Assembly: GCA_964270895.1 (NCBI GenBank) | Contig: OZ185437.1 | Source of the DNA: Podarcis filfolensis | Taxonomy: Eukaryota | Direction: 5' to 3' (one strand) | DNA length: 64,000 bases | In this document: positions 2,576-32,342 of the stretch, piece by piece | Layout of the letters: every line of letters begins with the position of its first letter | Numbering within the stretch: the stretch's first letter is position 1 | Translations under genes and position numbers: made by a program | The notes under the pieces: generated by a model | What the model saw: only the letters and a program-made list of their open reading frames with translations | The model's database searches: none | Told to the model about the DNA's origin: nothing

Positions 2576-3531
2576 CCCCCAAAATACTGGAATACACCCT
2601 GCTTCCTGCCAAACTGGTTGTTATATATCAGAGACAGCTAAAAAAACCCCTCATCTATATAGTTGAAAAGAGAGAAAAAGAGAGAGATTCTTATTTGTAT
2701 ATGTGACATCATTATAATTCCATTAATGTGAGCTGTCATATAGACAACTCTGTTTGGCTTCATTAAGGGGTTTTCCAAGCCCACGCAGGAAAGACAGAAA
2801 AGGAACGAGCTAATCTTGACTATTTTCAAAAGGACTATAAATTTATTTAAAACTGCGCGGTGCTCCTGTATAATTGCCAGTATAAATCAGAATAGCTCTA
2901 TTAAAGCAAATGAAATCACTCTGATTAAAACCAGCACAAGTTCTAGTTCCAAGACGCAGGCAATTCACGTCCTCATACAACAACTTATGTCCTTGCTTTC
3001 CAACTGCTGAAGAAGGATCTGCATTTGCCTAACAAGGGCATTCCTCTTGGGAGCAAACTCCGACTGCGGTTTACAAAATCCTTTTTGCAGACCCCATTTA
3101 AGCTCCCAGCCTCTTGTTACCATCCCTTTTCCATTGACAACGACCATCCATTCATCTTTAGAGCTTCTGCTTACATACTGATGTTAAATCCAATAAAACA
3201 AAGTAATAAATATCCTCCCCCATCCATATCCTCCCTTCTTAATGTGTCCATAAATTTCTAGCCAAGACTAGTCGGTAATAACACGTACAAAGCTTGCACA
3301 CATTAAAAAAACAGCGATTGAAAGTAAGCCGAGACATGGGCTATATCTGACCGCATTGCTCAGATGATGGTCAAGCTCCCATCTGCAGGATAGGAATCAA
3401 AACAATTTTTGGTGGCCACAGGTGTAGGTGGGTTCAGACATGACCCAAGACCAGATTTCAGCTCAAAAGGATTTATTGTAGCAACAGGAACAAGACTGAC
3501 AAACAGGGGCACTTGGACCAGTATATTTACC

Positions 3532-7713: not shown

Positions 7714-8008
7714 ACATTTTGGGAGGGAGGAGGTGGATGAAAAAACTAAATGGACAAAATTATTATTCATTAAATGTGTATATCGCCCTTCATCCATAGA
7801 TCTCAGGGTGGTTCACAACGTAAAATTGCAATATAAAAAATGCAAAATATATAATAAAGATAAGAACAAAAACAACCCAGTAATCTCCTCCTCCCGCAAC
7901 ACATTTAAAAGAGCATCAGATGTCAATCAGCCAAATGAAATCTTCTTTCAGGATTTTCAGTTCCTAAACAACCCTTTGCTCTCACCATTTCAAGTCCAGA
8001 ATCCAGAT

Positions 8009-8206
8009 TTACTGCACGTGGCAGGCTTTGTCCAGCTCGTTTTCTTCAGTACTTTGAGGGCTTTTCGTTTCAATTGCACTGGGGGTCCTAGCAGATCTTC
8101 CATCAACTGCTTGGGCTGACTGGTTGCAAGCTGAAAGGGGAGACCTGGGAGCAAATCCCAAGGGCGAAGCAGCAGCTAGGATTTCTTGCAGCCGCACGTC
8201 ATTTAT
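8009..8206 (-). CDS. CENPF: CENPF last coding exon, ends in CAAX farnesylation motif CHVQ
   Basis: INDVRLQEIL...ENELDKACHVQ*; CCCAG acceptor; human CENP-F ends CKVQ. Confidence 0.88.
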   Translation of the reverse strand: MNDVRLQEILAAASPLGFAPRSPLSACNQSAQAVDGRSARTPSAIETKSPQSTEENELDKACHVQ

Positions 8207-11200
8207 CTGGGAACACAGACACACAGAAAAAGTATACATGTATCAATCCATGCAAGGAAGACGTTTATTGATTCCAATGGCGAGGACTACTTTTCGCATT
8301 TCTGAGTCTAGTAGCGGAGCTGAAGGCCATGTTTTTCAAAAGTCAGTTGGATTGGCCTACTGAACCCTTGCCCTGCTCCCATGTAAGCCTCATCATTGCC
8401 TCTTATGGTCAGCTGGCTGGACCTGCTCAAAGTCCACTTTTTGATGGAGAAAGGTGTAAGGAAAAGAGGGACTTGTTATTGTTATTATTCCAGCACTGAG
8501 GCACTAGATCATATGAGCAGAGATGTTTCAAACAAGACCTTTGTCAGAATGTAGAATGTGGGAGGCAGCAGCTGCAAGTTGCCGGTCTCTGCAGCCACAG
8601 CAGGCGCTGTGATTCTCCAGTGGTTTGACTTCACCCCTAGAGGCACACTCCATTGTCTCTTGAGACAGATGCCAACAATGAATGAAGTGCAAAATTTAAC
8701 TGCTGGTTTTAGAATTTGGCATCCTAATTTTCTAGATGTATGAGGAAATTAGCAAAGGATTCTGTGTTTTGTTTATGTAGTTATATTGTATTAGGTAAAG
8801 GTAAAGGGACCCTGACCGTTAGGTCCAGTCGCGGACGACTCTGGGGTTGCGGCGCTCATCTTGCTTTACTGGCCGAGGGAGCCGGCGTACAGCTTCCGGA
8901 TCATGTGGCCAGCATGACTAAGCCGCTTCTGGCAAACCAGAGCAGCGCATTGAAACGCCGTTTACCTTCCCGCTGGAGTGGTACCTATTTATCTACTTGC
9001 ACTTTGACGTGCTTTCGAACTGCTAGGTTGGCAGGAGCTGGGACCGAGCAACGGGAGCTCACCCCGTCACAGGGATTCAAACCGCCGACCTTCTGATCGG
9101 CAAGTCCTAGGCTCTGTGGTTTAACCCACAGCGCCACTCGCGTCCCTTATATTATATTATATTATTATTAGGTTAAACTATTATTATTGTTATATGTATT
9201 TATACTCCACCTTTTTCTCAGACTGAGACTGAAGATGGCTTACAGATAAAAATACAAAAAAGCAGGCAAAAGAGAAAAAGCAAAAAACATAGAAAAGTTA
9301 GCCATTAACGATTAATTAAGCACTAATGGAATGAAAACAATATAAAGAAATCAATTAAAAATACTGATTGTAACAACAAGAAAACCATGGCAATACTTGC
9401 CCTTGCCTTAAAAAGTCAGTTTCCAAAGGCCTAATGGTAGAAAAAGGCCAATGGCAGAGAGACAACAAGAAGGGAGCCAGTCTAAATTCTCTAGGAAGGG
9501 AGATTCAAAGTCTGGAAGCAGTACAGCGACCAACAGCCTTGATTCAGAGGGATCTACAAACAGCAGTATGCCCAGGCCAAACTGGTGTGAAAGCTCTGAG
9601 AACAGTAAATCTCCACTTTTGAGATAACTAGAGGACATGAATGCAACACTCCCATTCCTAAAGGGGAAGGGGTGAGGCCGGCTTTAGCTCTTCAATTCCA
9701 TCCGCACCATGCAAAAAGGGACCAGCACTGAGAACACCAGCCACTACTTTGGGTACTGCATGCACAAATGCCCAGTGCTGGAAATACCATACACATATCC
9801 AAGCAGCTGGTTTGGGTATCCAGTGCCAGGAACCGCAGGTATAGAAATCCAGCAAGAAATGGGACAGGTGCAGGGTTTTGCATAGACGGTAAGATTCGGT
9901 TCATGGGGGATAAGGCTATCAGAACCACTAGGCATGATGGCTGTGTACTATCTCCGGTGTTAGAGGCAGTGTACCTATCAATCAGTAGCTGAGAACTGCA
10001 AGTTAGGACAGTGCTATTGTGCTCATGCCCTGCTTGCAGGCTTCTCACAGGTAACCGATTGGCCAAGGATGGGCCTTTGGCAAGATTCAGCAGGCCTCTT
10101 TTCTGTGTTATTCTATAAGTTTTCTGGTTAGATTTAATAGTCAGACCCAAAGCTTTCAGAACAAGAAAACTAGACCTTAACTATACACCTACACACCAGG
10201 TATCTGAAAGCTCATACCAATAACAAACTTGGTCTCTAAGGTGCCACTGGAAGGAATTTTTTTTATTTTGTTTCGACTACGGCAGACCACACAGCTACCT
10301 ACCTGTAACTATACACCTATGTATTTAGCACTCACTCCAGGTAGGTACTCAGTTAAGTGTTTTAAAGACACAAAAACCCAAAAACATCCCTTTTAAGTTC
10401 TTGAACATGTACCATGATTCCATACAGGCTTCATGATTTGTAAGCCAAATCTACACAACAAAGTTCTCTTCAGATTTTATAATTGGGGGTGTGGGGAGGA
10501 GCCATACAAGATCTCTGCTGCTAATTTATGGTCACTTCCTCCTATATTCACTTTTTCCATCTTCACGCTGATATGCTCACAACTTGTATAAGTAGAACGT
10601 GACACTCCCATAACCACTTGCTCAGATACATTCACAATCTGAATTTCTTGTGCTTTGGTACATTCAAACTCATGTTTAATAATACGCGCAAGTTACCTTT
10701 TGTAGTTTGCTGCCCTCTGGTGTTGCTTTTTGGTTTTCAAGCAAGCAGTCGCTCTCAGTTGTTTGGGAGTGATCAGTAAACGGTGGTGATCTCAAGCTTG
10801 GAAGGACAAGACAGGGGCTCGCTCTGGGAATTAGATATGCCCTGTGGGAAATGCAAGAGCTGCCATTTCCTAGAGGAACATCAGAAGATCCTGAGGGAGG
10901 AAAGTGCGTGGTGATCATTGTTTGTTACATTTTAAAAACTATGACAGGAATAAAAACAAAAAAGAAATAAAAAGGAAAACAACAACCAACTGTTTAAAAA
11001 CGGTTGCCAGCTCGCTTTTTGGGTCCAATTCAAGGTGCTCATATTACAGTGGTATCTCGGGTTACAGACGCTTCAGGTTACAGACTCCGCTAACCCAGAA
11101 ATAGTAACTCGGGTTAAGAACTTTGCTTCAGGATGAGAACAGAAATCATGCTCCGGCGGCGCGGCAGCAGTGGGACGCCCCATTAGCTAAAGTGGTGCTT

Positions 11201-14200
11201 CAGGTCAAGAACAGTTTCAGGTTAAGAACGGACCTCCAGAACAAATTAAGTTCTTAACCCGAGGTACCACTGTAGTGTTTAAATCCCTAAACAAGTTAGG
11301 CCCCATATACCACCTTATTCTTCTGACTGTAAATTGTATAAATTGATTTTAATCTTGCGTTTTTATATTGTTGCAACGTGCTGAAGGATGAGTAAGATAC
11401 CCAAAAGAAGAAATAAATAATATCAATGATAGTTTGTTGCTGTACAGTATGCATTCTGGCCCTGCAGCATCTGAAGACTATGCAAGGTTTTACAGAGGTG
11501 TGTTGTTTGTCAATTAGGATTATCATAGAATCATAGAACTGTAGAGCTGGATGGGACCCTGAGGATAATCTAGTCCAACCCCCTGCAGTGCAGGAATATG
11601 CAGCTGTTCCCTACGGGGATCAAACCTGCAGTCTTGGCATTATCAGCACCATGCTCTAACCAACTGAGCCATATAGGAAGTTCCCTTCTACAGTCAGACC
11701 ATTGGTCCACCTAGCTATGAACTGTCAGTGGATCTTCAAGAGTTCACACAGGAGATGCTCCTAGATCTACCTGGAAATGCCAAGGACTGAACCTGGATCT
11801 ACTGCATGCTAAGCGGTTGATCTACCATTGATCCATAGCCCTTCCCTGACATAAATCCTTACAACAGGAACATATACTTATTTTCATTTCAAGTACTACA
11901 GATAAAGTGTTTCTGCAGTCTCCCAGGTGGGTGCTTTCAGCTTGAAAGATAATGGTTTCCTTTTGCTAGTTAGTATCTGCATAATGTGAGGCCACTGGCC
12001 CCAAGGCTATTAAGGAGTCAAGCATTCATGGAATGAGCCCACAGACTTGCGTTCTTGAGTAGTCCCAAGCTTAGCGATTTCATCAGCGGTTAAGTGGTTT
12101 GCAAGCTGCAGCTCCAATGGCCACAAAGGCCTCTCTTGCCCTCACCAGAATGCGCCCACTGTATCTTGCTGCCCCAACTCCTGTTGTTGGCAATAATCCT
12201 AAATCCAGCTGAGCCTTTTCTGAGAATGTCGAATGGAGAAAAGCCTTCCACGTGAACATCTCCCTTTACAGAGATCGCAGGAAAAAGCAGTTTGCAGGCA
12301 ACCACTTGTTTGGGTATATTATACTTCTGTGGTTGTAAAGGTTTGGCAATAGCGTTAGACAACTCTCTCATCACTTTATAAACGCCATCTCCAACTCCTC
12401 GAAAGATTCAATCAACTGTTTCTCCAAAAAATTTTACACATCACTTTGGAAGACAGGTGAACTAATGCCAGTGTACTTGGAGAAGCAAAGGTCGCCAGTG
12501 TCGAAGCAATTATTCTTCAACATTAACTTTGTTAGACTGGTCATGTTGTTCAGATGCCTGATCAACATCTTCCAAAGCAACTACTCCATTCTGAACTTTA
12601 AAATCGAAAATGTAATGCTGGTGGTCAACGCAAGAGGTTTAGAGACAAATTTCTAAAAATGTAGTATAAACACTGACAATTGGGAAACACTGGCCTGCGA
12701 GCGCTCCAATTGGAGAACAGCCTTTACCAAAGCTGTCATGGGCTTTGAAGACACTTGTGAACTCAGGTCGAAAGGGAAAAACATGCTAAGAGGAAGGCAT
12801 GTTTGGCAAACCCTCACCATGATCCACTTCTGACCGGAAACCTATGTCCCTACTGTGGAAGGACGTGTGGATCCAGAATTGGCTTCCACAGTCACTTACA
12901 GACTCACTGTTAAGACTGTGTTCATGGAAGACAGTATTACTCGGCTATGAGTGATTGCCAAAGAAGAAGATGATCACTTTACATGCAGAATTTTACACCC
13001 TTATGCCTTGTAATGGCAGCCTTAAATTTTATTCCACTGGTCATACAAATGAGAATACAAAATGGTAAAGGGCAAACATAGGGGGATAGATTCAGTTACC
13101 TCTATTGTGCCTCTGTATCAAGCTGTAACAGGAATGTTATTAAACAAACATCAATACTGTTGTGAAAGTGATTACCTTTGCCTCCCACCTCTGTGGAACC
13201 ACCTGACTCAAATTCTGCATTTTCTAGGGGCACTTTTGGGCTGTGCTGTTGAAATGCGGTTCTTCTTTTAGTTTGTTTTGAGGCAGCCTCTGGAAAAGGA
13301 GATGTAGCACTTTCACCATTGTTTCTGTTTTCATGACAACTTTGCCTCCTCACAGTAATCTTAGTAATATCTTCAGATAAGTCCTTTTCCACAAGCAGCC
13401 CATTAGTGATTTTTGTTTGGCTTCCTGGACTTTGTAGAGGGGAACTGGAAGAGTCTGATGACTGTTTGAGCCGAGTGTTCAGAAGAGAGACTTGTGTCTT
13501 TAGCATCTCGTTTTCTTCCTCTAATTTATCATAATCAATTATCAGGGTACAGTACTTATCCAGGTTTTGATCAGCTTCTGCAGTTTTCTCTTCAACCAGT
13601 TCCTTCAGATCTTCCAGCTCCAACCTTATCTCTTCTGCGGTGGCATTCCTATCAGAACCTATGCAATGAAAGAACAGCCCTTAATAAATGAAGGATTAGC
13701 AACAGAGACTTCCAATATACTTTACCTGAAAATATTGTAAAGAGCATTTCAGCAGCAGTGGACACCAAACACGATCGACTCCTTTAGATATGTAGTTCAT
13801 CTTAAGACCTAAAGATCTTCCTCAGTCCTCCTGGAGCATGGCCCTTTCTGCAGTGGCACCAACGCTGTGAAACTCCCACTCACTGGGTATCTATTTCATT
13901 TCCTGTCTTTAGTTTCTCTGATGGTTTTCCAATGTGCTTTTTCAGGGAATGCTATAATTGCTTTAATTTTTATTTTAAAAGATGTAATTTGTGGGCGATG
14001 CATGCTGTGGGCCACCTGCACCAAATGATGAGTTAAAATATTTTAGCAACTACCTAACTACTATGAAATTGCCAGAAGCTTCATATGAAAAACGAGAGGT
14101 GGGGACCTCTTCTCTGCTGTTGCCAGTGGATGAAATAACAAGTAGGGTGGCAGGAGCTGGCCCAGAATGGGATAAAAAAGGCATCTGTGCAGAAGGCTGT

Positions 14201-17200
14201 AGATAAAAGCTCAATGCACACCAGGATGATTATGCTAGATAGTGGGTTGATGCTGACCATGGCACAACCAGAATCCCAGCATGACCTTTTTTCAGGGTTA
14301 GAACGAACAGCAATACTTTTTTGCATTCTAATGTCAGCCGGGGCTACTGATGAGGGAACTGTTGTTGCATTTTTGCACACATACACACAAAGGCATGAGG
14401 AATCTCCAGCCCACAGGCCAAATTAGACCCAGCAGAGGTCCTAATTTGGCCCCTGAGGCTTTCCCCCCCAAACCACGGCCAGCTGCCCCTCACACGTGAC
14501 ATCAGATGTGGGACATCAGATGTGGGGTTGCAAAGGGACGATGAGGAGCTTAAAGTGACTGTTAGGTGATTAATAGGTGCGCAGCCCCACACACATGTCA
14601 AAGCAGCCCAAGGTGGGGTTGAGGGAGGAGGCCTGCCTGCAGGATGGAAAAAGCTCCCCACGCCTGCACTACATACCTGGATCCATCTTCTTCAGTTGAA
14701 TCTGAAGTTCATGAATCTGCTTCACCATCACCTTTTTCTCCTGCTTTAGTTCTGTGTAGGTTTTCAGCCAATGCTGAAATCTATGATGGAAAGAATCAAA
14801 TTCTGTCTTGAGTTGCACTGTTTGCTGGTGGCTATTTGCCTGCAAAATAAAATAAAAATAAACCGGTAAACATGCATTCAATTATTGCTGCAGAAGCAAT
14901 AATCACCCAGCCAAATGCAAAACCGGGCTTCTCATTAGTTCAAAGTAAAGCGCATGGATGTTCTCCTTTCCTTCCATAACACCCACACTGTTGGGGCAAC
15001 TATGCTATTTCCTAACAGGACCTGTTAACTAGAGCATCTGATGAATTCCATAAAACGAAACAAACGTCTACTGATGTCCTTCGGTTTGCACCAGACAGGC
15101 CCTAGCTGTCTATGCCAGAGATCCAAAAGCAGAGTCCAGTTTGCACATGCTGTTAATGGTTCACTTCAAGCATGCAGAAGGCTCTCAATGCAATCCTCCC
15201 ATGTGGCCAGGGAGATGTTAATCCAGACACTAAACCAAGGTTTCTTCTCGGCTTACCAACTGCAGCATGTTTGAGCAAATCTTGGTTTGTTCAGAATGAA
15301 ACAAACCACAATCCCTAGTTCGGACATAACACTAAGCCAGGGATCATGGCTTGTTCTTCCTGCCATCTAGATGAGATGGGTAAAAGGGAAGATTTCTGCA
15401 TGTTCGCAGTAAAGCATTACTATGGTTTACCATAACGTGCAAACACTGCTGCTATGTTGCACATCACAGCAACTCTTTACTATGTACGCTGTAAGTAGCA
15501 CAGTAATAGACTAGGGCTACTATCCTATGCACGCTTATCTAGGTGTAACTCCCACTGAACACTGAGTACTATTTCTGAGGAAACATCCATAAGATTATGC
15601 TCTACATCAGGCATAGGCAAACTCGGCCCTCCAGATGTTTTGGGACTACAATTCCCATCATCCCTGACCACTGGTCCTGTTAGCTAGGGATCATGGGAGT
15701 TGTAGGCCAAAAACATCTGGAGGGTTGAGTTTGCCTATGCCTGCTCTACATATTTCATGTTATACTTATATATAACATACTTTACAGTTATGATTGCAAT
15801 AGAACTATAAACTTAAATATCAGCTTGTCTTCTTCAGATAAAGTGGATTTTGATTTTGGGAACCACATCTGCAGTCACTCAATGTTACTTTGTTATTTGG
15901 CGCCAGGCAAAATGTATTTAATCTCTACATGCATATTCTAGAAAACTCCCCCAATATAAAAAAACCCCCAAATCAGCCTTTAATTTCAGAAGGAACCTAT
16001 TAACCTACAAGATATTCTACCCATGATGTCAACAATATGCTGTACCTTTTCAAGGAAGGCAGGTTTTTCAGAAGTTGCAGCTTCCAACTCCACCTCTGTA
16101 GCCTCAAGACTAGACTGCAGAGTTTCATTTTTGGGCAACTGCTCCAGAACAGGATCACTGTCATCCAGCTTTTGTATGAGGTCTTGGAATTGCTGGGCGA
16201 GGACCTCCAGCAAATGCTCCATTTCAGAATGTTTGTGTTTGGCTTCCTGTAGATGATGAGCCAACCGTCCATTCTCTTCTTTGACACAAGCAACTTCATC
16301 CATCAGATCCTGTTCTTTTGTCTTGAAATTCTCTTCTTCACAATGAGGAAGTTTAACTTCTTCACGGGCCAGTTTCAACTGGGATTCCATCGACATCAGC
16401 GCGTTTTCAAATTCACCTCTAATTTGCACCTTCTCCTTCTCCCTTTCTTCTAGCTGCTTCACAAGCATGGAATTAAGACCTTCTAAATCAGATACTTTAT
16501 CCTGATTTTCTTTCAGCTCTCTCTCTAGAGATCCTTTTTCTAACTTTAAGGCATTCACCTCACATTCCAAGCTTTGCAAAGTCGCACGCATCATTTCTAT
16601 CTCCGCAGTGGCTGTTTCTGTCTCTGCTTTAGCCGTCTCTGCCCTAAGAATTGCATCTTCCAAATTGTCCTCTGACATCTGCAATTCTCTTTCGAGATTC
16701 TCAATTCTGTCTGCAAGGGAGTCAGCTTTCCGTTCGCTTTCTTTCAGTTTTCCCGCAAGGTGACACCTTTTCTTTTCGTCGGATTCTATTTTTATTTTGA
16801 GCTTCTCGATGCCCTGTCGCAGCTGAGACAACTCCTCCTGTGCTGAGTTCAGCCTAGTTGCAAGTTCACCCTTTTCTATTAGCGACCCTTCCAGAGACTT
16901 TGATATCTTGGCATATTCCATTTCAGAGATACTTAACTTGCTGTGCAAAGTTTCATATTCCCTAAGGCTCACTTCTTTTTCCTCATTCAGATGCTCTATT
17001 TGGCTTTGCGCTGCCTCTTTTTCTAACACAAGAGCCCTCATAACCTGATCCAGATTCTGTAACTGCAGCAGAAGTCTGTCCTTTTCGGTTGATAACCGAT
17101 GAGTATCGGCCTTCGTGGCCTGAAGCAATTTTGCCTGAGTATTAGCTTCGGCTTCCAATATCCTGATAAATTCAGCAGAATCCCCTTTACTCGACTCAAG

Positions 17201-20200
17201 TTCTTTGATAGTCTCTTGCATTTTCTGGCACATTTGATCCGATTCTTCTTTATCCTTCAACAAAGCACTCAGATCTTGACTAAATTGGTTTCTCTCAGTG
17301 ACGAGTATATGAAGCTGCTCTTGAAGGCCAAAAATGCTTTTCAGTTTATTTTCGTTTTCTTTTTCCAAATGCTCGTTCTTTAACTGAAGCTCCTCGATGT
17401 CGGTCTCCATGGATAAGGCATGGTTCTCAATATTTGCTTTCTCAGATTTTATCCTCCTCAGCTCATTTTCAGTTTCAAGAAGCCTCTCAGTCCAGTCGGC
17501 CTTGTCCATTTCCAAATCTTCCAGAGTCTCTGTTGTATTGGACAGTCTTGCCTTGTACATTTCCATATCAGATTTTACCTTCTCAAGTTCTATTCCAAGA
17601 GCCATAAGGCTGTAAGACAACTGCTGGTTATCAAAAGTAACAGACTTAAGTGACTCATTTAAGTCTCCTTTTTCTTTTTTGAGTGCTACAACTGTTTTGT
17701 CCAACTCTGCACAAGCAGTTCTCTCTGCAGCCAGCTCTTTGTCCTTTGAATCCAGGCCTGACTTTAGGTTTTGGATCTCCATTAGTAGAATATCAGCTCT
17801 TTTACTGCTTTCCTCCACGTCAGGGAAGGGCTTGGAGATTTTATTACATGTCTGCTCTACTTCTAGCAGAGGCTTTTCAGGGGCCCTTTGGCTTTCCAAG
17901 GTGTTCACAGGCATCGCATCAGTGTTTTGAGAAGGAAGAAACGATAACTCACCAGGATAGTTTGGAGAATTAATGGATATATCTGTTGCATTTCTGGATT
18001 CTGTGTCTAAGTCCAGAAGGCCTCTTTCTCTAAATTTCATGCAGATTGCTTGGCAAATAGATTCTTCATCTTCTGTTCTATTCGCTTCACCTGCCCTTGC
18101 TGATATTTTACTATTTTCAGCTTCAAATGTTGTGCTTTCACTGGACATGCCATACAGTTCCAGTTGACCCAAGGGATCAATTGCTTGCTTAGCGGGAATC
18201 TGGACTTGCTAGAAGTAGATGGGGAAAAGAGAGTCATTTTAATTAATAAGTCACTTTTATCAAACTGATATATTTATTCTTTTATTTATTACATTTAACT
18301 GTGATACTTCCTCCCCAAAGGAGTCCAGGGTGGCAAAAAAATAAATAAACACATCTTCAAAAACAATGCCAATGACCTCTGCTGAATAAAATGGGAACCG
18401 ATATGTAATGTTTTGGTAGATAAAGAACACACTTAATATTCTAATATGGGCCCTCCTGTTGATCACCTGGGGAAATTGTTTTCTGCAGGGTCCTCTGATT
18501 GTGTGGAGAGCTCTACTCACTTTCAGAGAAATGCAAACGTAATTGCTGCACAGACCTTCCTAGTCCAACACAGGGAAGGCTGGGGAACTTGGGCAGTTGG
18601 GGGCAGAGCATTGGGGGCAGGACATGCATGTGGGCCCCGCTGGCTACACAACTTGGTGCTCACATTTTCAGGCAAATGCTTGAAGACACCTCATCTCTTA
18701 TGCAACATTTCACCAAAGCAGGCTCTTCCCACCTACTGATGTCATTCCCTATTACATAAATTGGTCCTCTGTAGCAATAATCACACATAGCTGTTGTTGC
18801 TGGATTTAATACAGTGGTACCTCCGGTTAAGTACTTAATTCATTCCAGAGGTCCGTTCTTAACCTGAAACTGTTCTTAACCTGAAGCACCACTTTAGCTA
18901 ATGGGGCCTCCTGCTGCTGCCGCGCCGCAGGAGCACGACTTCTGTTTTCATCCTGAAGCAAAGTTCTTAACCTGAAGCACTATTTCTGGGTTAGCGGAGT
19001 CTGTAACCTGAAGCGTATGTAACCCGAGGGACCACTGTATATGAAAGAACCTGGAACTGAAATACTAATATTTAGCAACCTTGGCATACTCAACAAGATT
19101 GCTTTTTTGCTGTCAAGCATACTCTTCTCCCCTCTCTGAGCATATTTCTTGGCTGGAGCCAGGGAGGGACAGAATTTAACTGGCAATAATGGCCATAAAT
19201 TGAGGCTTTAAAAATGAGTAAGTTGATGCGAAGCTCTTCTTTCAGAATTCGGATACAAAACCAAATCTTTATGTATCTTGATTCACTGTTTCTTAGAATA
19301 CAGAAACTACAGCATTTCAAGGCTGTCAAAATAGTTTCAAATTGGGTGCGTGTGTGAAAGAAATAAGTTTTAAAACAGGGATAGTTAACATGGTGCCCTC
19401 CAGATGTTGTTAAACTACAACTCCCATCAGCCCCAGCCAATATGGCCAAGGGTCAGGGATGATGGGAGTTGAAGTCCAACAAAACATCTGAAGTTAGCCA
19501 CCGTGCTTTTTGAACAGCCTTTGCTCCCAGTCTAAAGAGACTTCCTCCCTTCCCTCCCAAAACAGTACACATGGGTAATCTATTGAACATACATGCAAAA
19601 CTGCATGATAAGAAATTAGGCACACTTACGTGTTCGGTGTCAACGCAAAGCAGAGACTGAGAACCTAAATCAAGGCCTTGCAGTGGTTCCTCTAGTTCCT
19701 GAGGCAACAGGTCAGGATGTTTCTTCTCGGCTGGCAATTTAGATGCCACCTGCAAGACCACATCATTAAGTTTTCGTTGCCACTGTTTGCTTTCCGATAT
19801 ATTTTGCTTTTGGAGACCATCAACTTCCTTCCTTACAGAAAGGAGCAGTTCTTGGATCTTTTGGATCTCTTCGTCTTCAAGATTTTTATGCGACTCAAAT
19901 GAGTCTTCAAGCATCCTGAAGGACTTCTCATAAGCCTCACGTAGGAGGTGTTCGACTCTCTTTTTTAAATGATGTCTTTCAGGCATGGCACGCCCCTTCT
20001 TCATGATACAGGCCTGTGGGTCACTGTCATTCCCTTCTGAAAGAAAGTGGCCATGTTCCTCAGGGGTACTTTCTAGATCAGCTTGTTTGTTACTACTTAG
20101 GTCACTTATTTCATTTGATGGTCTGTACTGATCAGAGTCGATATCAGATTCCACAAGAGTTGGACTTGTACACAAGGAGATTTTGCTGCAAGAAGGAAAT

Positions 20201-23154
20201 CTCACGGAGAACTTTCCATGTGAATGAAATTCTTCATTCATTAGAAGAGGGGTTACCTGTGTTGTGAAGGAAGAATTAGTGACTTGGTCGAGGCTGGTTG
20301 ATAGTGCAGCATTTTCCTCCTTGAGCATGTCAACATAGCTTTGCAGCTCTGATATTTTGGCGGCCATACCCGAGTGCTGCTCTTGCAAGCTGCTATATTC
20401 ATTTTTCAAAGAGAAGATTTTTTCCTTGACCCCGTCAAAGTGCATTTTAATTTCTTTGCTGGATGGCTTCAAACCTTTGCAGTCAAGTCCATCACAACAT
20501 TCCAGAGCTATTAAGGGCACTTGCTCAATATCAGATTGTGCTGCTATTTTACTGTGATCTATTAAACCACCAGAAAAAGCGGCGCTCTCTTCTGTTCCAT
20601 TATTAATTCTGCCGATGAGCTCTTCTGCCATTGCGCCTGTGATGCATTTCAATTGAGAGTCTTTCAGCTGTGATGCTAATGTTGACTTTTCAATCTGCAG
20701 GTGTTCGAACATTTTCTCCAACTCATTGAGCTTGCTCATTGTCATGTGTAGGGAGGCTACTAATCGGACATAATCACTTTGGCTGGGCGTCAGATCATGA
20801 GGAACTGACGAACACTTGGCATCTATCTGTCCGCTAAAGTTGTCCTTGGAAACAGCATTGAAATGTGCTGCTGATTGGTCATTCCCTTCCTCTTCTGTAA
20901 GCTCTAAATGTGGATTTTCCACATCTTTAAGAGCTTGCAATTCGTGGTTCAGCCTCTCTCTCTCCGTTTCGTTTTCTTCCAGTTTTATTTCCATAGTTCT
21001 CAGAGCACTCTCCAGCTGCTTTACTTGATCAGCATAGTTCTCTACTGAGGCCTCTCTGTCCTCAAGGTCCATTTGAAGCAGCTCTAGCTGAACCTGATAT
21101 TTATTCAGTTCCTCCTCCTTTTCTTCCACAGATCCTCTCAGCTGTCCCAGTGAAGTCTTCTCCACAGGAAAGCCACCAGCTGCACGTTCGTCCCTTATTT
21201 CCAGTTCCTTGACAAGTTCCTCGTTCTCTTGCAGCAACACAGCGTTATGATGCTGCATTTTATGAAGTGCTGCTCTTTCCTGTCCTAGAATCTCAGTTTC
21301 TTCAGGTACTGCCTGCATTTTTTCAAGCTGCTGAAGCAGAGTGTTATTTTCCTTCTCCAAGGACACAACCTTACACTTCAGCTCCTCGTGTTCGTTCATG
21401 AGCTGCTTCTCTCGCTCTTCAAATGTGGCTTTCTCCACTTCAGAATGGCATGCTTGCTCCCTTAAAGCACATTCTAAGTTCTTATTCTCTGCTTCCACTG
21501 ATCCACATTTCTTTTTTGATTCTTCAGATTTAGACAGCAACAAGCTTTTCTCTTTAGGCCTTTCTGACAGTTCCAAGAGGCTTTCCTCCCTCTCCCTCTG
21601 GCTTCTGGACAGACGGAAGCTGGTCTGCATTACGTCTAGATTTCTTTGCTCTAGGGCACTGATATCAATCTTAAGGCCAAGATTTTCATCACTAACTCCT
21701 TCAATTAGCTTTTTATTTAAGGCTATTGGTGCCAATGCATCTGGTTCCTTGTGGCTAACTGTTTGAGGCGTAATTTTCAGTTGCTGCACTGTATCCTCAA
21801 GGAAAGAGTTACTGCTTCTTAAATTCAGAATCTCTGCTTGCTGCCTCTCTGATTCTGCAATCAGTGCTTGCAATGTCTTGTTTTTCTCCTGGAGAGCCTG
21901 TAAAGTCTTAGTGACCAAGTCCTGCTTTTCGGAAACAGCTGCTTCCAACTCACTTATGCGCTTTTCCTTCTCCCTAACAAAATCTTTATGCCTTTGCTCT
22001 GCGGCAGCCAGTTTTCTTTCTGTCTCATCTCTGGCTTGGACCAGCTCCTCACATTGTTTCTCGAAGCTGGATTTTAACTGCACGTGGGAAGCTAAGGATG
22101 TTTCCAAAAAGGCCATACATCTGTCCTTTTCCAACATTTCCTCTCCTACCGTCTCCAGTGTTTTCTGTAGAACATCCACTTGTTTGGTGAACTCAGATAA
22201 TTTCAGTGAATTGTTTTCTCTCTCTTTTCTGTGTTTTTCCTCAGATGCTGCTGTTTTATCCTGAAGGTCACTGTGGGCTTTTCTTTCTGCTTCTAGCTCT
22301 GCTGTTTTGTCTTCCACCATAGCTTTGAGATTTCTAATCTCCACACAAAGGTTTTCATTCGTACCTTCTAAAGCTTTTACTCTCTCATTACTTTTAAGTT
22401 GTTCGGTCATTAAGGCCCTTTCCAGGCTGCAAATCTTGCTCATCAAATCTTCTTTTTCTAAAACAAGTTCATTTATGAGTTGCCCACTTTCTTTTTTCCA
22501 CTGGGAAAGAACCTCAACCTCTTTTTTAAGTTCTTCACACTCTGTAAGAACTTTCTGCAAAGCTTCCAGATCCTCCAGTTTTACAGTGAGCTCTTCAATG
22601 GTGTTTTCTTTGTGCTTCAGAAGCTGCTGGAGAGAGTCTCGTTGGTTTTCCAATTCAGAAATAGCAAGTTTCATTTTCTCCAAAGTGAGAGGATTCTCTT
22701 GTTTGCTCAGATTCTCTTCAAGTAGTTTTAACTCTTTTTCCAGAGAGCAATTTTTATCTGCAATCCAAGTGATTGAAAGAAAAGGGGAAGTGTTTAATTT
22801 ACAAAAAGTAAGATTCCTTTATTCTCTTTATTAGTGTTACTCATTTACTTTATCTATTTTATCCCACTTGTTCTCATCTGGTAACTTAAGGTTTACACAG
22901 ACACACCTGGATCTTATCTTTTTCCCTGTACACTGCAAAACATAATGCATATTGCATAGAATTCTAGCCCAATGGTTGCCATTAATTTGATTTTGAATTG
23001 ATTTTAGAATGAATTGACTTTAGAATGCATTTCAATTAATTGATTGTGATTTTATGTAAACTGTGTTACTTTTATTGTTGTTAGCCGCTCTCAGCCCGGC
23101 TTTGGCTGAGGAGGGCGGGATATAAATAAAAATTATTATTATTATTATTATTAA

Positions 23155-23200
<46 letters not shown>

Positions 23201-25386
23201 TTATCCAGTTATCAAAATCTACAATGGTCGCCCAAGCTGCTTACAACATGCTAAACAAGATTTAACTCAGTATATGCTATACAGAGGGACCTCAAAACAC
23301 AGAATAAGGTTCGGAATGGGAAGGAAACCTAATAAAAATTGGTGACTCACTTTTCATATCTTCAACGACGTTTTGACTCTGCTGCAGAAGTCGTTTGGTT
23401 ACACAGAGCTCTTCTTTTAACTGACAAATTTCTTGCAACTGTTGAGCCGACTGGCAGTGAAGGAGGCCATTTTGCTTCTTTGTTTCCTTGGACAGCAAGA
23501 ATTAAACAAGTGACAGTTAAAGAATTGGCTACCTTTGACTAAGGTTCTTTGACTCATTGAGCCAGCTAAGACATACATTCCGAGTTTGCTAAACCATAGT
23601 TTACCAAGCCAGGAACTAGCAGCGGGTCTTCTCCCCTTGCTCAGCAATCTTGGGTACCCAATCCCTTCCTTTCGTATTAGTTCTCAGAAGCTTAAACTAC
23701 ACTTCCCCCATTATGCCCAAAATGGGGAACTATGGTTTAATGTCGGTTTACTACCCATCGTTTAAGATCCTGGTTAATAAGCTGACCTTCAAACCATAGT
23801 TCCTTGCTTTCAGACATAATGGAAGTAGGAGCAATGTGCTGAGAAAGGGAGGAGAGCGTGCATAGACAACTCCAGCTTGCTAAAGTATAGCCACTGCTTG
23901 CAGGGAACTTTTAAATTGCAAATAGAGGATCCAGTAAGAAATAAAACAAAAACAACTGCTGAGAAGGCTTTGCTAGGAAAAATATCAAGGGAGATGAAGT
24001 CTCCAATGTGATTCCAGGCACAACAGTGACCTTGAACCATACTTTCTTTTCTTTCTGGATGTATAGCCTACCATCCAAGCCCAAACATATAATTCAGGCA
24101 CTTTACATGTAGGAACATTGCAATTATCTAGCCAGCTATACCTTTTCAGGTCGTCTGGCCCACACAGTCCCATCATCAGGAGAAGAGTGGAAACGGCTGT
24201 GGCTAATTGACTTGCCTCCCAGCCCACAGACCAAGATAAGAGGGCTGCTGAAATGAAGGCCTTTAGAGATTGCCGTGAGGGTGCCAACCCCTTTAATTTT
24301 GAACTGTTGAATGCATTATCCGGTAGGAGGAAGTGTGTGATGTATTATTATTGGGCAGTAGCTAGAACTGCATTTTTGCCGCCCCGAGCAACTGTCTCGA
24401 TTCTCATGCACTTGTGCATTTCAGAGCTGCTTAATACCGCTCAGTGTGAGAGACTGAACCGAACCCTGCATTGGAGAGAGACAGGAAGGAGGGGTGGAAA
24501 TGTTGCTCTTTATATATTATATATGGCCTTAGTCTGAGGTGGGTGAATGAGCTGGTTGTCAATTATGCTTAATGCTGCTATGTATTTTTGTAGACCAGAT
24601 GTTTGCTTTGTAATAAATGGTTGGCTGGGAATTAGCTTTGTTATCTGTATTCCTGGTGGGAATGCATGAGTGAGACTAGGAGAACTGCTAAGGGTGTATT
24701 TTGGAGAGGTTGCCACCGTGTGAGGGGTGTTTAGGAGTGTAGGCCCAGCTTCTATTTCAGTTATTTCGTTTAGTTGCCAACGATGCTGTTTAGTGGAGTT
24801 TTACTGTATTTTTGTATTTGATATCTTCCTGTATTTTTTGTATTTAAGAAAATGCTTTCTTTTCCTGATAATACATTGGTTGAAATGCGTTATTTTGTAT
24901 TTGACCTTCATCTGTAAGGTTTTATGTTGATGCTTTTGCAACGCTTCATTTGATGCTTTAAGTAAGGTTGTGGAGCGCTTTGAGGTATTTTTTGTTTGTT
25001 TTTTTACATACAAAGCAGTACAGAAATTATTTAAATAATAAGTAAATAATTACTGGAGAAAGCCTTAGCAGTCCAGACATGGTCTACATGCTTTGGACTG
25101 TATCAAGCTGGTCTGTAGGGCTAACGTCTCTAAAATGCGAAAGGAACTTGAAGCTACACTAGCTGCTTAAGACACACCCATTCTAAATGTAAATCCCAAC
25201 TAATGTCTGCCAGATGCAATGATGTCCCTCAGTGTATTCCAAGAAAAAAAGAGAGAAGAGTTACCCTGAAATGTGCTTAGAATCATTTAAAGGTTTATAG
25301 TCCTCAATGTGGTGTATTTTTCATCTTTGTTGGAAGCCGCCCAGAGTGGCTGGGGAAACCCAGCCAGATGGGCGGGGTACAAATAA

Positions 25387-25425
<39 letters not shown>

Positions 25426-28400
25426 TATTATTATTTATTATTATTTATTATAGAAAGGGAAAAAACCACAAAAATGTGTTACATATATAATACAAAGACA
25501 ACTGCACAACATCAGGACCATAATTTTACAAATAGTTCAAGACAGTATTCACTGAAATATAAGGCTTCTCCCTGTGGGTTAAACCACTGTGCTGCTTGGG
25601 CTTGCCAATTGAAAGGTCGGCGGTTTGAATCCCCGTGATGGGGTAAGAACATCAAAGTGCAAGTATGGCCGGCCATATGACCCGGAAAAACTGTCTGCGG
25701 ACAAACGCCGGCTCCCTCGGCCTTTAAAGCGAGATGAGAACCGCAACCCCAGAGTCATTTGTGACTGGACTTAATTGTCAGGGGTCCCTTTCTTTACCTT
25801 TACTCTCTCCCTATCTGAACTAAGTAGATAAAAAAGATGCAAAAGAGAATGACGACTTCCTGACATCTAGAGGTTCTGCACACATCTGAGCAATTCAGCT
25901 GTGGGAAACAAAAAACGCATTTTATGCTATGTACTTTCTGGCTTAGAAGGCTTCTGAAAGGAAGCCATGTTTGGTCCAGTAGCCCAATTCCACCACACTT
26001 TTCCACAAACGCAAATAACCTTCTCCTCCATCAAGCGAGAGTTATCGGTTGACAACTGCCCTATCATTTCTTATACACCAAGAGAACGGCAGCAGAAATA
26101 TTATCACACTGGCAGGCTACAGCTGACAGGCAGTGCACTCTAAGCAGCTGCCAAGCGGCATATGCTAAGTAAGGAAACCTCTAGCCTGCTATAAATTATG
26201 CCAGGACAAGGGGGTTTTGCAGGTCAAAAAAGGGGGGGGGGGTGTATCAGAGAACCACAACCCAATCACGGCCCCTTTAGTGCTTAATGGAAGAGGGAAA
26301 CTCGACAGCCAAAGGTCTCTGAGTTAAAACTGCTATCAGAGACAGGGTTAGAACTCATGGAGGCTTCGGGGCCAGGTCTTTTCGGCAGAAAGCAGGTATC
26401 TCGCGGATAGATAAATCAAAAGCTAGCCGCCCTCCTGAACAGTAGATCCTAAACACACGATCGCCTTGCATCTAAACTCTTCCCCAGGAAGGAGTGTGAA
26501 ACAATTTGGAGCACTCTGCACTGAACCTTGAAAGCATTAGAAGAAAAAAGAACTGGCCCCTGTCATCATAACTCACTCTCCCTTGGGAAGCAAAAATAAA
26601 AAGCCAGTTCCTAAAGAAAATGGCACGTACAAACACATACCGCCCACTCCTGAGCCGCTAAGATAACAGATGGCATTGGCAGGGCTTTGTTGGTCTCGAG
26701 CCCTCAATTATCCATCTAGTTACTACTAGCAGATGGGCACCAAACGCACCAAAGCCAAATTTAAGAGAAGGGACAACCAGGATGGGAAGCATAAGCTGGA
26801 AATTTGCTGGCAAAGCAGGTCTGTATTTCCAGCTATTTAAGCAAATCAGCCCGAGAGCAAGATTAAACTTGTTGTTGCTTCTGCTCATCGCCCGTCCTCC
26901 CCGCACGCCCCGTGCCGCAACCCCCGCTCAGCTCCCATCAGAAAGAGAAGAGGCAAACTGCAGCGCCAACGTTTCCCACACAAGTGCCCAAATGCAAAAG
27001 CTCAGGGTTTTTCTGACTTTTTTTTTTTTTTTTTTTGGATGCGCAGCGCGTAATGAGCATCCTGCAGTTAAAGGCTCCTTAACAGTTTTAAGCACAAGCA
27101 TAAGGACCATTAGCCGGCGATTTAAAAAGCGCTGCTGGAATACGATCACGGTCAAGTGGCTTAAACGGATGCAGAGAGCAATGGGGCTTTGCATCCTGTG
27201 TGATTATCATTAGGGGCCGGACCAATAAGCTCACGGGACTTTGACAGAAGACACGAGCTCTGGCCTTCATCATCAAACTGTGCACAAGGAAGCAACGAGA
27301 TACTCTTTTATTCCATCCCCACCCCTGGCTTGGCTTTTCTCCTCCCACATCCCAGTTCTCCCAGTGATGCTACCAGCAGGCACATCACCATAGCTGTCAA
27401 CGTTTCCCTTTTTTAAAGGGAATTTCCCTTATTCCGAATAGGATTCCTCGCAAGAAAAGGGAAAAGTTGACAGCTATGCACATCACTCTTTTGAGATGAC
27501 AGGTGCAAGGAGCTGTAGGCTCCGTTAACGTTTGCCGGAGCCTCTTATTAATGATGGGGCCCTGCAGTGAGCCCCTCCCCAATAACAGCTTAGGTAGCCG
27601 GGGGTCTGGCAAAACCTCAGCCAGTCTGGGAGCCTGGGCATTGTGTGGACCGGAGGCTCTGCAGCAGCAATCGAGTCTGCTGCATTTCACTGGATGGGAA
27701 GCAGTCACAGGCGTTTCCAGACGGATCTGCAACTTGCCCCGTTTGGCTGAATGCACCAGTAACGAGGGCAGAAGATACCTCACAAAAGCCTCCTGGATGC
27801 CACCTTTCGAAGTCTCTCCAGAGGTTTGGAGGGGATTCCTACAGAAAACTGTGGGCTGTGTTTCACGGGACTATAGTGGGAGTGGCTAAATAATTTCAAG
27901 TTTGCAGGAACAGTACACTTCACCTAACCAAGTCCTTCGCTGCAGCTTGCAAGTTCAAATATATATCGGCTGATGGTCGATACACGGTCATAAGGCAAAA
28001 ACCTCCATTATCTCTCGCCACTAACACTTGCGCTCTCTCTGGCTTGCAGATCGCGGCTGACAGCCATTCTGACTGCTCTGGGCCAGGTCACAGTGATATT
28101 GTTAACTGTGCAGTTGATGGGTCATGCAGTGTCCTGCTCCTAAATATATCTCTTCTTTGCCAGAACTGAAAGGGCAAGTGGGATTCACATCAGCGACACC
28201 AGGCCATGGGTCGTAAATATGCAATTATTCCTGTAATTCTGTTTACCTCACAGGCTTTTTTCAGTTCGCTTTCCTTCAGCTGCATTGCCTGAGTAGCCTG
28301 GTCCGCTCGACTCAACTTCTGTGAAAAATCATCAACCTTTTTTTCCAATTGCTGCTTTGCAGACTTAGTCTAAAGGGGAAAAGATGGCACGTTTTACTTT

Positions 28401-30681
28401 GCAGCCACGTGTGACATTAAACGATACGGAAATATTCTCAGTGCAGCTGGGGATTCACAGAAGAGGCCACTTAGAAGCATGTTTTTGGAGGTCAGTGACT
28501 GGGATGATGAGGGGGTCTAGAAACCTATGAGGAACGTTTGAAAGAGCCACGTTTGTTGAGCCTGGAGAGGGCTAAGGGGAGAAGACAGAAGACAGAGCCG
28601 ACTTGTTGCTTCAGAGAGCAGGCCTAGAACCAAGGCAGATTTCTGCTCAGCATTAAGAGAGCCAGGGTAGCCTAGTGCCCAGGACCTGGGAGACCAGGGT
28701 TCAAATCCCCTCAAAGCTCATTGGGTGACCTCAGGCCACTCACTATATCTCAGCCTAGCCTACCTCACAGGGTTTCTGTGAGGAAAAAATGCAGAGGGGG
28801 GATATGTGTGCCACCTTGAGCTCCCTGGAGAAAAAGTGGGATATAAATGTAATAAAAATACTAAATTAAAAATAATTATTTAATTAAAGAGATCTTGGTG
28901 AACCAAACAGCCTCAGGAAGTGGTGAGCTGTCCCTTACTGGAGTTATTTCAGCAGTGACTGGATGGTTTGTTTGTTTTTATTATTTAAAAAATGTCATTG
29001 ACTTGAAAGATTCATGCGCTGAGGGAGCTGCACAAGCTCACCTCCAAGATCCCATCTGACTCTATAAAGTTCTAGGATCCCTCCCCCTCACCAGCCATGT
29101 TTAAAAACTACCTACTTTCTCAAGTTCTGCTTGAAGAAGATTGTAGTTGTTCTTGGCTTGATGCAGTTCCCCTTGCAATTTCGTTTTCACTTGATTGAGC
29201 TGGAGAGACGCTTCCTAAAACAGCAACGTTGGGGGAAACGAAAATGATTATAAACCAGGAATGTGGCAAATTGTCAGATATTCCTGACCTGATCTCAGGT
29301 GGTGAAGGAAATGAAAAAAATAATAATGGGTGAAATTTCCAAGTTGCTATGCACCCTGAAGACCTGCATGGCTTTTTGTTGGTGAGCCTTTTACTAAGAA
29401 AGGAACAATGAGGAAATTGGAATATATAAATAGATATTTTCTACTGTTCCACTTTTCATTATGATTTTGTTGACAAGAAGGGTGGGAAGGATTCAATTGC
29501 ATATACAATTCACTGAATCGCATCTATGGCCTGTAAAACTGGTGCCATCAGCCCAGTGGGGCCTTAGAGACTTAGTTTTTCTTGAACAGCTGCCCTCCTA
29601 TGGCAAATTGCTTTGGAAACCAGAAGAGTTTCAAAAGCAGCTTGTGACATGGCATGAAGGTTAGGAGTTCAAAGGAAAAAAAGGGGGGAGGCAAAAACTC
29701 CACCGAAATTGCACACCCTGCATGTGAGCTTAAGTAGGTATGCTGATTCTAGCCTAAGTAGGCAACATTGGAGGACGTAGGAGAGAAATCAAATGTATCT
29801 GCTGGTATGCAACTTGTGGCAGGAACGAAAGAAATATTAAGGAGCAGGGCAGATTAAAGCTGCAATCCTATGCACGCTTATTTGGAAGGTAAAAAGAAGC
29901 ATTTTTTCCATGGACTGAAATGGGAATATATATTTTTAAATTTACTGGTCTTCATTCTTAAAAGAAATGCAAATCTTCGTTAAACCTTGATAGTCCTGGT
30001 ATTTTGAAAGATGCCCAAGATATCAAGAAACAAGCCAATAAACAGGCTGTTCACCTGTGGATGTGGGCTGATGGAAGTGCGATGCAGGACTGAACATTAG
30101 CAGGATCCTTCCAGGGACCCATGGGCTCCCCCAACCCCCCTTTCACTTGTGAAAATTTCCCCCTTCCCTGGCTTTACCTCCTGGTACTCTTTCTCCTTCT
30201 CTTTCATTTTCTGTTGCAAAGAGTGTTGGGCTCTTTCAAAATTTTGTCTCTGGCAGTTCAGCTCCTCTGAAAGCCTTTTCACCTTTTCCTCGGATGCGGT
30301 GTGCTATAAAACGAGTAATTTCAATATCACAAGGGTTAGAATTATCTGGAACTAATATGAGCTGAATTAAATTATAGCTGGAAAAGGGGGGAACAGTAGA
30401 GCATCTTAGAATAAAACAAATAAGAATGAATTATTTATAGATGAATAATTGTGAAGCATGAGGTAAGGAAGTTGTCACCCTCACAGAGCAATGGGAAAGA
30501 CTTCGTTTCACCTGCTCAGGTAGGATTGCTGCTGTTAAAATGCTTTTTTCCCAGTTCTTGCTAGCAACGACAACAACTCAACAGATATAGCCATAACTTA
30601 TTTCAGTATATGGCATAATGGAAAATTAGGGCCAGGATTTTATATTTTTTGGGGTTGGTTGGTTGGTTGGTTGGGGGGAGG

Positions 30682-30725
<44 letters not shown>

Positions 30726-32310
30726 CAGTCAATCCCAAATTTACAATCATATTAGGCAGCAAACTAGATTAATTAGATGGTAGACTGGACAACAGGGTTG
30801 AATTCCACTACATCAGGCTTACATAGGTAATGTCGGGAGGGTGGTTCCATGGTTCTGCTCCACATCAACCACTACTGAGGTCCACTGAAAAGCATTGCTT
30901 CAGCAGATATCAGATTATATGAATGTCTCTCCAATATCAGATCCACAAAAATATACAATGAGTGTTGTGCATGCATGTGGGAAATGCCTCTTAAAAAGTC
31001 TAAGATTTAATAAAGCACCTTACCTGATTCATGGTCTGGTCAAGTTGTGCGTTAATTCTAGTTACTTCGTTTCTACTCTTCTTCAGAGCTGTATCTTTTT
31101 CTGTCGACTCCATTTTTATATGTTCCAGCTGCAGCTTAGTTTCCTGAAGTTTAGCCGTGGTTGATTTCAAATCCTGTGTTTGAATCTGTAGATTACGTTC
31201 CAGTTCTTGAATCTTGGATCTTAACTCTGTATATACACAAAAGTGTGAATAATATAGTGTTGCTTCATATACCTTGGACAGAGTTTGCTTGCTTCTCTAC
31301 AGGGAGATATTGAAATCATCTCTGCATACGAGTTTGTAAAATGCATTGTTAGCTTAGCTTTGTAAACACATCTGCCTTGAAACCCTCTTAAAAATCATAC
31401 TTAAATTCTGGCATAATATACCTATGAGTGATTGGGAACGATTATGGAAAAAAATATATTAGGTTCACTTTTATGTTATAATTTAAAAGAAAATATAATG
31501 AAAATGCAATACAGGTGGAACTTAACCCCAGTCAAATTGGCAAAGATATATAAAAATAACACAAATATGTGTTGGAGGTGTAAAGAAGGACTAGGAACGT
31601 TTATCCACATGTGGTGGGAGTGCAAGAAAATAAGAGAATTTTGGGAGGTTATTTACAATGAAATTTTTAAAAATGTTTAAATTCTCCATTAACAAAAAAC
31701 CTGAGGCTCTTTTACTTGGTATTATGCAACGAGAAATTTAAAAAACTGCTCGACCCATATTTATATACGCGACCACCGCAGCTAGGATTATAATAGCCAA
31801 AAATTGGAAAAGCAATAACATTCCCACGAATATTGACTGGTTAGTAAAAATGATGGAGTACTCACAGCTTGCAAATTATCTGGGAGATTAAGAGGAAACA
31901 CCATACAAAGAGTCAATAAAGATTGGTCAATATTTAAAGACTATCTCAAAATTTATATAGAAAATACAAATCTGACAGATGTATAAATAAATCTAATAAA
32001 TAGAGAAGTTGAATGAGAAAAGATGAAATTATTACAAAAGAAAAACAAAATAAGCAAAATGAAATGTGCATAGATTTAATGAGTGACAAAATTACATAGT
32101 GAGACTGGCTGGAAGTCAATAATCACAGTATGTTCGCATCTTGGTTGGTAGGTAGGTAGAAGGGGTGGTGAAGGTGAAGTATGTGTTGTATGTTTTGTAT
32201 GTAATATATGTAAAGTAATGTTAAGTATATATTGTTTTGTAAAGTATTGATATTTATAATAAAATCGGGGGGGGGGGATCATACTTAAATTCTTTTGAGT
32301 TCTCTAGATA

Positions 32311-32342
<32 letters not shown>

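Follow-up and report, generated by a model that had tools for sequence, protein, structure and literature searches.

A degenerate Miro-binding domain in the CENP-F proteins of squamates, and a serine at its pocket position in lacertid lizards

A stretch of 64,000 nucleotides from the lizard Podarcis filfolensis (contig OZ185437.1 of assembly GCA_964270895.1; hereafter the window) contains the gene CENPF, whose product binds the mitochondrial GTPase Miro in mammals through a short domain near its C-terminus. In the window, this domain is degenerate, and Ser stands at the position of the Phe on which binding depends in human and mouse. Has the link between CENP-F and Miro been lost in this lizard, and, if so, is the loss its own? 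A preliminary description of the window had proposed a natural loss in a lineage, or else a co-evolved Miro surface. Sequence comparison across vertebrates suggests an older and broader event: it is probable that strong constraint on the CENP-F–Miro link was lost before crown squamates, that the 46-residue domain decayed, and that the pocket Phe was lost later in lacertids.

The motif across the exon junction

The minus-strand product across the 13176/10890 splice junction reads EFESGGSTEVGGK on the upstream side and GSSDVPLGNGSSCISHR on the downstream side or, in wider context, ...KVPLENAEFESGGSTEVGGK followed by GSSDVPLGNGSSCISHRAYLIPRASPCLVLP...; the downstream exon side begins GSSDVPLGN... 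and is preceded by EFESGGSTEVGGK. This is exactly the product first written in the preliminary description, and the change from Phe to Ser that it placed at 10888-10886 is borne out by the codon table: TCT (10886..10888, minus strand) encodes Ser at the Miro-pocket Phe position (human F2989; human residue numbers are taken from PMC6428352 and PMC10897228), one T>C change away from TTT. The preceding Gly codon is split by the intron as G and GA, and the Gly before the pocket position (human G2988) is thus kept. The acidic +2 residue (human D2991) is also kept, as the Asp of GSSDVP, and the Leu or Phe of the Miro ELF-pocket motif is absent, with Ser instead.

By translation and alignment, the first half of the domain (13177..13215, minus strand) is EFESGGSTEVGGK, where other vertebrates have E[Y/F]EP[D/E]GLPEVVKK; the second half (10799..10890, minus strand) is (G)SSDVPLGNGSSCISHRAYLIPRASPCLVLP, where other vertebrates have GFADIPxGKxSPYILRRTTL..RTSPRLAAQ. 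Intron phase and position are as in the turtle, bird, gecko, and Rhineura loci, in which the same Gly codon is split before the Phe, so that register and intron position are kept, as had been claimed. The identification of the segment as a degenerate CENP-F Miro-binding domain (PF10490, CENP-F_C_Rb_bdg) likewise holds, by alignment and by both Pfam and hidden Markov model (HMM) scores. The joined window peptide scored 17.4 bits with an HMM built here from 16 outgroup sequences, the one model with which it was scored; PF10490 was unmatched when the two window exon pieces were scanned separately, a result of little weight since the model spans the junction.

The exon carrying the first half, third from last in the coding region, had been taken to begin at the start of its open reading frame. 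An acceptor AG at 13660-13659 moves that start to 13658, and a donor GT at 13175-13174 closes the exon (13176..13658, minus strand), which is covered by transcript-like contigs and encodes a coiled coil, a linker, and then the first 13 residues of the degenerate domain. The intron that interrupts the Gly codon immediately ahead of the Phe/Ser position (10891..13175, minus strand) holds only repeat-like DNA and is skipped exactly by contigs; its acceptor AG (10892-10891) precedes the second-from-last coding exon (10697..10890, minus strand), which has AG/GT borders and contig joints to both neighbouring exons. The last coding exon (8009..8206, minus strand), assigned by translation and an AG/GT border, includes the terminal CHVQ and the stop.

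The contigs come from four public runs of three related organisms, for which the RNA label is a guess that the exon-only coverage fits. One of 1382 nt (X17, record 9) joins 13660..13175, 10889..10697, and 8206..7986 with no letters between; two others (X18, record 15; X5, record 23) show the same joins for parts of the three-exon span, and the 8206/10697 joint was found in all four runs. The contig comparison showed only the best-supported differences, and the letter of the Ser codon rests on four genome assemblies. No GF[A/S]D[I/V]P-like peptide is encoded in the three frames scanned in the intron (10891-13175) or in the six scanned across the entire window, which contains no N; neither these scans nor the contigs revealed an alternative exon or reads restoring GFADIP, either of which would have undone the original interpretation. 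The degenerate motif belongs to the real, expressed C-terminus of an intact lacertid CENPF.

Conservation outside squamates and degeneration within them

Approximately 150 CENPF proteins were gathered by a representative search and two tail-directed word searches, one with a gecko tail and one with a turtle tail. The preliminary description had allowed that the motif might prove poorly conserved in non-mammals; instead, it is strongly conserved from shark to birds. GLPEVVKKGF[A/S/G][D/N]IP and SPYILRRTT are kept in shark, coelacanth, caecilians, salamander (axolotl), frogs, four turtles, alligator, most birds, marsupials, and placentals, with GFANIP in the shark and one frog. Among 16 outgroup sequences, 20 of the 46 columns are near-invariant, and the Phe is present in all 16. 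In the domain, sequences from different tetrapod classes are on average 0.72 identical, as compared with 0.25 in the flanking linker and 0.32 in the tail. The strict pattern G[F/L][A/S/G][D/N][I/V]P occurs in 77 of 108 long, CAAX-ending CENPFs; the remaining 31 are squamates, six parrots, Phaethon, Calidris, and one further protein (P0036).

The exceptions among birds are of a milder kind. Parrots (P0089, P0092, P0100, P0105, P0120-P0122) read GFADIT, GFADIH, GFTDTT, or GFPGIT, with LHR replacing LRR in the domain, and some parrot isoforms leave out its first half; the ruff, Calidris pugnax (P0142), has GIADIP, Ile replacing Phe. Birds besides parrots and the ruff are canonical. A shorter "CENPF-like" paralogue of 1383-1584 aa was also observed in Latimeria (P0180), Hypanus sabinus (P0181), and Rhinatrema (P0182), with an intact EYEPYGLPEVV.KGFADIP near its C-terminus and no CAAX end; none turned up for any squamate among the CENPFs retrieved.

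The squamate sample comprises more than 20 CENPFs: five geckos, a skink, a cordylid, an anguid, Varanus, three iguanians, seven or more snakes, Rhineura, and five lacertids. The domain is degenerate in every squamate CENPF found, geckos included. PF10490 is absent from the precomputed Pfam annotation of all sampled squamates and present in that of turtles, alligator, birds, and amphibians. Scanned directly, against a gathering cut-off of 21 bits, PF10490 scores 86 bits in a turtle, 75 in Rhea, and 79.8 in a caecilian; among squamates it scores 22.4 in Elgaria and 13.6 in Podarcis muralis, with no match in Lacerta agilis (E<=10), gecko, skink, Phrynosoma, or Pituophis. Our own HMM separates the groups similarly, with outgroups at 83-106 bits and squamates at 3.7-27.

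At four columns that are invariant in the outgroups (the L of GLP, the second V of VV, and the L and R of LRR), none of the 12 squamates whose domain is fully covered keeps the outgroup residue; these shared replacements would most simply date to the squamate stem. Among squamate families, identity in the domain (0.44) falls between that of its two flanks (0.37 and 0.56), and that of the upstream coiled coil is 0.72. No replacement motif of the Miro-binding kind was found elsewhere in the squamate CENPFs examined. The erosion and the shared replacements thus join the lacertid protein to the CENPFs of geckos, Elgaria, Tiliqua, Hemicordylus, Rhineura, Phrynosoma, and snakes. All squamate CENPFs found share the CHVQ/CAAX end, and they are similarly short, at ~2440-2630 aa; those of turtles and birds reach 2880-2960 aa, making the squamate proteins ~300 residues shorter. 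The proposal of a natural loss in one lineage therefore stands in part: Ser occurs in all five lacertids, but the erosion is squamate-wide and not a lacertid peculiarity.

Fate of the pocket residue and rates of evolution

Most non-lacertid lizards, unlike lacertids, keep Gly-Phe: it is still present in geckos, Tiliqua (a skink), Hemicordylus (a cordylid), Elgaria (an anguid), Phrynosoma, and the amphisbaenian Rhineura, whose full exon reads ...GKGFAGVIP. The five lacertids with Ser are the window species, Zootoca (protein only), Podarcis muralis, P. raffonei, and Lacerta agilis, and the four with DNA (all but Zootoca) share the codon TCT. In Rhineura, two geckos, two turtles, and three birds the codon is TTT. 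The lacertid TCT against the TTT of Rhineura and the outgroups points to one T>C change after the lacertid-amphisbaenian split and before the ancestor of these Lacertini. The lacertid Ser is a later and probably terminal step on an already eroded background. Within the remnant domain (10874-10799), the window species further differs from the other four lacertids, with DVPL for DVPP, ISHR for ISHG, and LVLP for LVRP; these window-specific differences fit continuing drift.

Snakes have no core in their exons. In Python bivittatus (L005, ~26350-28220), the homologue of exon 13658..13176 is cut ~45 codons short and reads into a stop, and the next exon takes up only after the GF core, so that the first half of the domain and the core are missing from the exons; from this structure, the Miro core would be absent from the snake mRNA, and the nuclear localisation signal (NLS)-like KQTKRR stretch as well. 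Four other snake proteins show the same pattern, and the annotated proteins of Pogona and Sceloporus, seen as protein models only, are without the core. The Varanus model (P0110) continues into the intron after GGKG.

Codon alignments of the last three exons were made for three lacertids, Rhineura, two geckos, two turtles, and three birds, the Python locus being used only for exon inspection. Over the 46 codons of the domain, the ratio of nonsynonymous to synonymous rates (dN/dS) is 0.12 in turtles, 0.21 in birds, and 0.15 between turtle and bird; it is 0.93 between lacertid and Rhineura and 0.74 in geckos. In independent pairs, the proportion of nonsynonymous to synonymous differences (Nd:Sd) in the domain sets squamates apart from archelosaurs (Fisher p = 0.04 and 0.01), and that in the flanks does not (p = 0.9-1.0). 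The domain is more constrained than its flanks in archelosaurs (p = 0.002) but not in squamates (p = 0.5). These data, though from a small sample, are consistent with a domain-specific release of constraint in squamates.

Loss or remodelling of the Miro contact

What such changes would mean for binding can be judged from work in human and mouse. In human CENP-F, either G2988A or F2989A abolishes Miro binding; in mouse, F2872A takes CENP-F off mitochondria and leaves its other localisations in place, and mice with this change are viable, fertile, and healthy (PMC6428352). Human F2989, corresponding to mouse F2872, is the pocket-inserting Phe (PMC6428352, PMC10897228), placed by modelling within the hydrophobic ELF pocket of Miro ELM1, with D2991 pairing with R263 of MIRO1 (PMC10897228). 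The same pocket serves TRAK, MYO19, MTFR1/2/1L, VPS13D, and Parkin, and Miro-client motifs are short and very diverse (PMC10897228). A search for a solved structure of the CENP-F Miro-binding domain found none.

The human and mouse domain (human 2977-3020) is like that of the lizard in gene, in near-C-terminal place, and in the intron splitting the Gly codon, and the core Gly and Asp and the downstream CAAX are common to both. The two differ in the Phe, now Ser, in GLPEVVKK, now GSTEVGGK, and in SPYILRRTT, now SSCISHRAY, and the lacertid region falls below the PF10490 threshold. The mouse allele Cenpf F2872A changes the same residue and, as in lacertids, removes a large hydrophobic side chain; CENP-F then leaves mitochondria, with kinetochore and nuclear localisation retained and the animals viable and fertile (PMC6428352). 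The lacertid change differs in being natural, fixed in the family, and set in a domain already stripped of many conserved residues. The ancestral CENP-F G-F-A-D-I is the prototype of the short motif class to which the other ELF-pocket clients belong: TRAK1/2, MYO19, and MTFR1/2/1L, the last with FADI, FADV, or LADI (PMC10897228); the lacertid G-S-S-D-V, with no Leu or Phe at the pocket position, does not fit this class.

On the reading that we favour, strong purifying selection on the 46-residue domain would have ended before the crown-squamate radiation. The L of GLP, the second V of VV, and the LR of LRR would have been replaced on the squamate stem, and the domain would from then on have drifted about as fast as the disordered linker beside it. 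The pocket Phe would then have been lost in several lineages: by TTT>TCT in lacertids after the amphisbaenian split, in snakes by the core dropping out of the exons, and, in annotated models, by deletion in some iguanians. Lacertid CENP-F would offer no large hydrophobic side chain to the ELF pocket of Miro1/2 and would not be recruited to mitochondria at cytokinesis. Judging from the human and mouse mutagenesis, lacertid CENP-F is most likely not recruited by Miro, because even Ala at this site abolishes binding and Ser is small and polar. The coiled coils, leucine-zipper repeats, and farnesylated CAAX remain, and presumably also the kinetochore and nuclear-envelope roles. Loss of the link is tolerable rather than paradoxical by analogy with the F2872A mice, which are viable and fertile (PMC6428352).

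Several observations weigh against this account. Within lacertids, domain dN/dS is 0.34, from ~3 nonsynonymous and ~3 synonymous changes, and the dN/dS contrasts as a whole concern 46 codons and few independent pairs (p = 0.01-0.04). For Pogona, Sceloporus, and most snakes, the evidence of loss comes from annotated proteins, Python alone having been checked in DNA. Gly-Phe is kept in 6 of ~10 squamate lineages after ~200 My, and several states peculiar to squamates (S at the position of L, SH in place of LR, SPCL) are common to different families; given this retention and sharing, the region still bears some constraint and may have been remodelled, not just abandoned. The diversity of client motifs (PMC10897228) means that a weak or alternative Miro contact may also persist. 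Word searches with the gecko and turtle tails returned no Sphenodon (tuatara) protein, so that within Lepidosauria the relaxation may have set in either before or after the squamate lineage parted from that of the tuatara.

Remodelling in its full form would hold that the squamate region is still used. Miro might be bound in a new way, with a compensating substitution on the side of squamate Miro or a different hydrophobic residue entering the pocket; alternatively, the region might contact another partner or take part in phospho-regulation. In either case the lacertid Ser would be a functional variant. The shared states suit it: S for L at column 28, G14, and L43 each occur in 12 of 12 squamates, H for R at column 29 and Asp at +2 each in 10 of 12, and to these may be added the Gly-Phe retained in geckos, skink, cordylid, anguid, Phrynosoma, and Rhineura, the within-lacertid dN/dS, and the short, diverse nature of Miro-binding motifs (PMC10897228). 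However, Ser cannot fill a hydrophobic pocket, and already Ala at this position abolishes binding in human and mouse (PMC6428352). A co-evolved Miro pocket in lizards, the other possibility raised in the preliminary description, is unlikely because TRAK, MYO19, MTFR1/2, VPS13D, and Parkin use the same pocket, whose change would be heavily constrained (PMC10897228); the lizard RHOT1/2 genes themselves lie outside the window. Between-family identity in the domain, no higher than in its flanks, the dN/dS of 0.74-0.93 in the two deeper squamate pairs, and the outright dropping of the core in snakes also argue against continued use, and we consider remodelling unlikely, though not negligible, beside a loss of constraint.

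An artefact is highly improbable, whether from wrongly joined exons, an alternative exon missing from the annotation, an error of assembly, or a pseudogene copy. Gene models do vary here: that of Lacerta agilis (P0078) reads 8 residues beyond the donor of the exon homologous to 10890..10697, and those of Rhineura (P0079) and two geckos (P0070/P0071) splice from a donor farther upstream and so lack the first half of the domain, as do some parrot isoforms. This explanation is largely refuted by contigs of four public runs from related organisms joining the three exons exactly as read, by TCT in four independent lacertid assemblies, and by the absence of an alternative frame in intron or window. 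The whole gene is, moreover, open. A collinear tblastn match to CENPF of Podarcis muralis (P0076) delimits a complete coding region of ~16 exons (8012..37299, minus strand), with 2596 of 2625 residues aligned to 37299..8012 at 83-100% identity. The query carries PF10481 and PF10473, placing the N-terminal domain within the aligned range, and the leucine-zipper repeat domain (PF10473, CENP-F_leu_zip) is present at 15989-18172 (E=4.3e-59, 199 bits). Identity to Podarcis and Lacerta over the last three coding exons is 96-97%, which marks the window as that of another lacertid, and the product ends in the C-terminal CAAX farnesylation box, CHVQ, followed by the stop (8023-8009). CENPF in the window is an intact, full-length gene.

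Less credible still is ordinary divergence of a motif poorly conserved outside mammals generally, for which the parrot variants (GFADIT, GFADIH, GFTDTT, with LHR for LRR), the GIADIP of Calidris pugnax, and the GFANIP of shark and one frog might speak, but which is refuted by the Phe and 19 other near-invariant columns kept in 16 of 16 outgroups from shark to mammals, by strict-pattern mismatches that fall mostly on squamates and a few birds (77 of 108 matching), and by Pfam scores of 75-86 bits in turtle, ratite, and caecilian.

Within the last two introns of the window gene, the segments 8684-9271, 10056-10447, 11036-11819, and 12408-12995 are covered by very many contigs of very high summed depth in all four runs, and have the appearance of dispersed repeats that are transcribed. 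A related peptide-like frame (…RVALWVKPQSLGLADQKVGG…) recurs at 9146-8988, 7152-6994, and 376-179.

The gene and the domain were already known. Neither the erosion across squamates nor the change from Phe to Ser in lacertids appears to have been reported in the literature searched, in which no paper linking CENPF with squamates or lizards in this sense was found. The erosion contradicts the published generalisation of a near-identical domain throughout chordates. The chances seem to us evenly balanced that Squamata, with >11,000 species, represent a natural knock-out or re-wiring of the CENP-F–Miro link, the Phe then being lost independently in lacertids, snakes, and some iguanians. The contact has been mapped residue by residue, and a decayed domain in a whole vertebrate order would measure when the interaction becomes dispensable. 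Natural variants are at hand for binding comparison: geckos and skinks with Gly-Phe in changed flanks, lacertids with Phe changed to Ser, and snakes with the core deleted. If the loss is real, squamates would distribute mitochondria at mitotic exit without CENP-F, and the clade could be used to find the physiological role of the CENP-F–Miro interaction.

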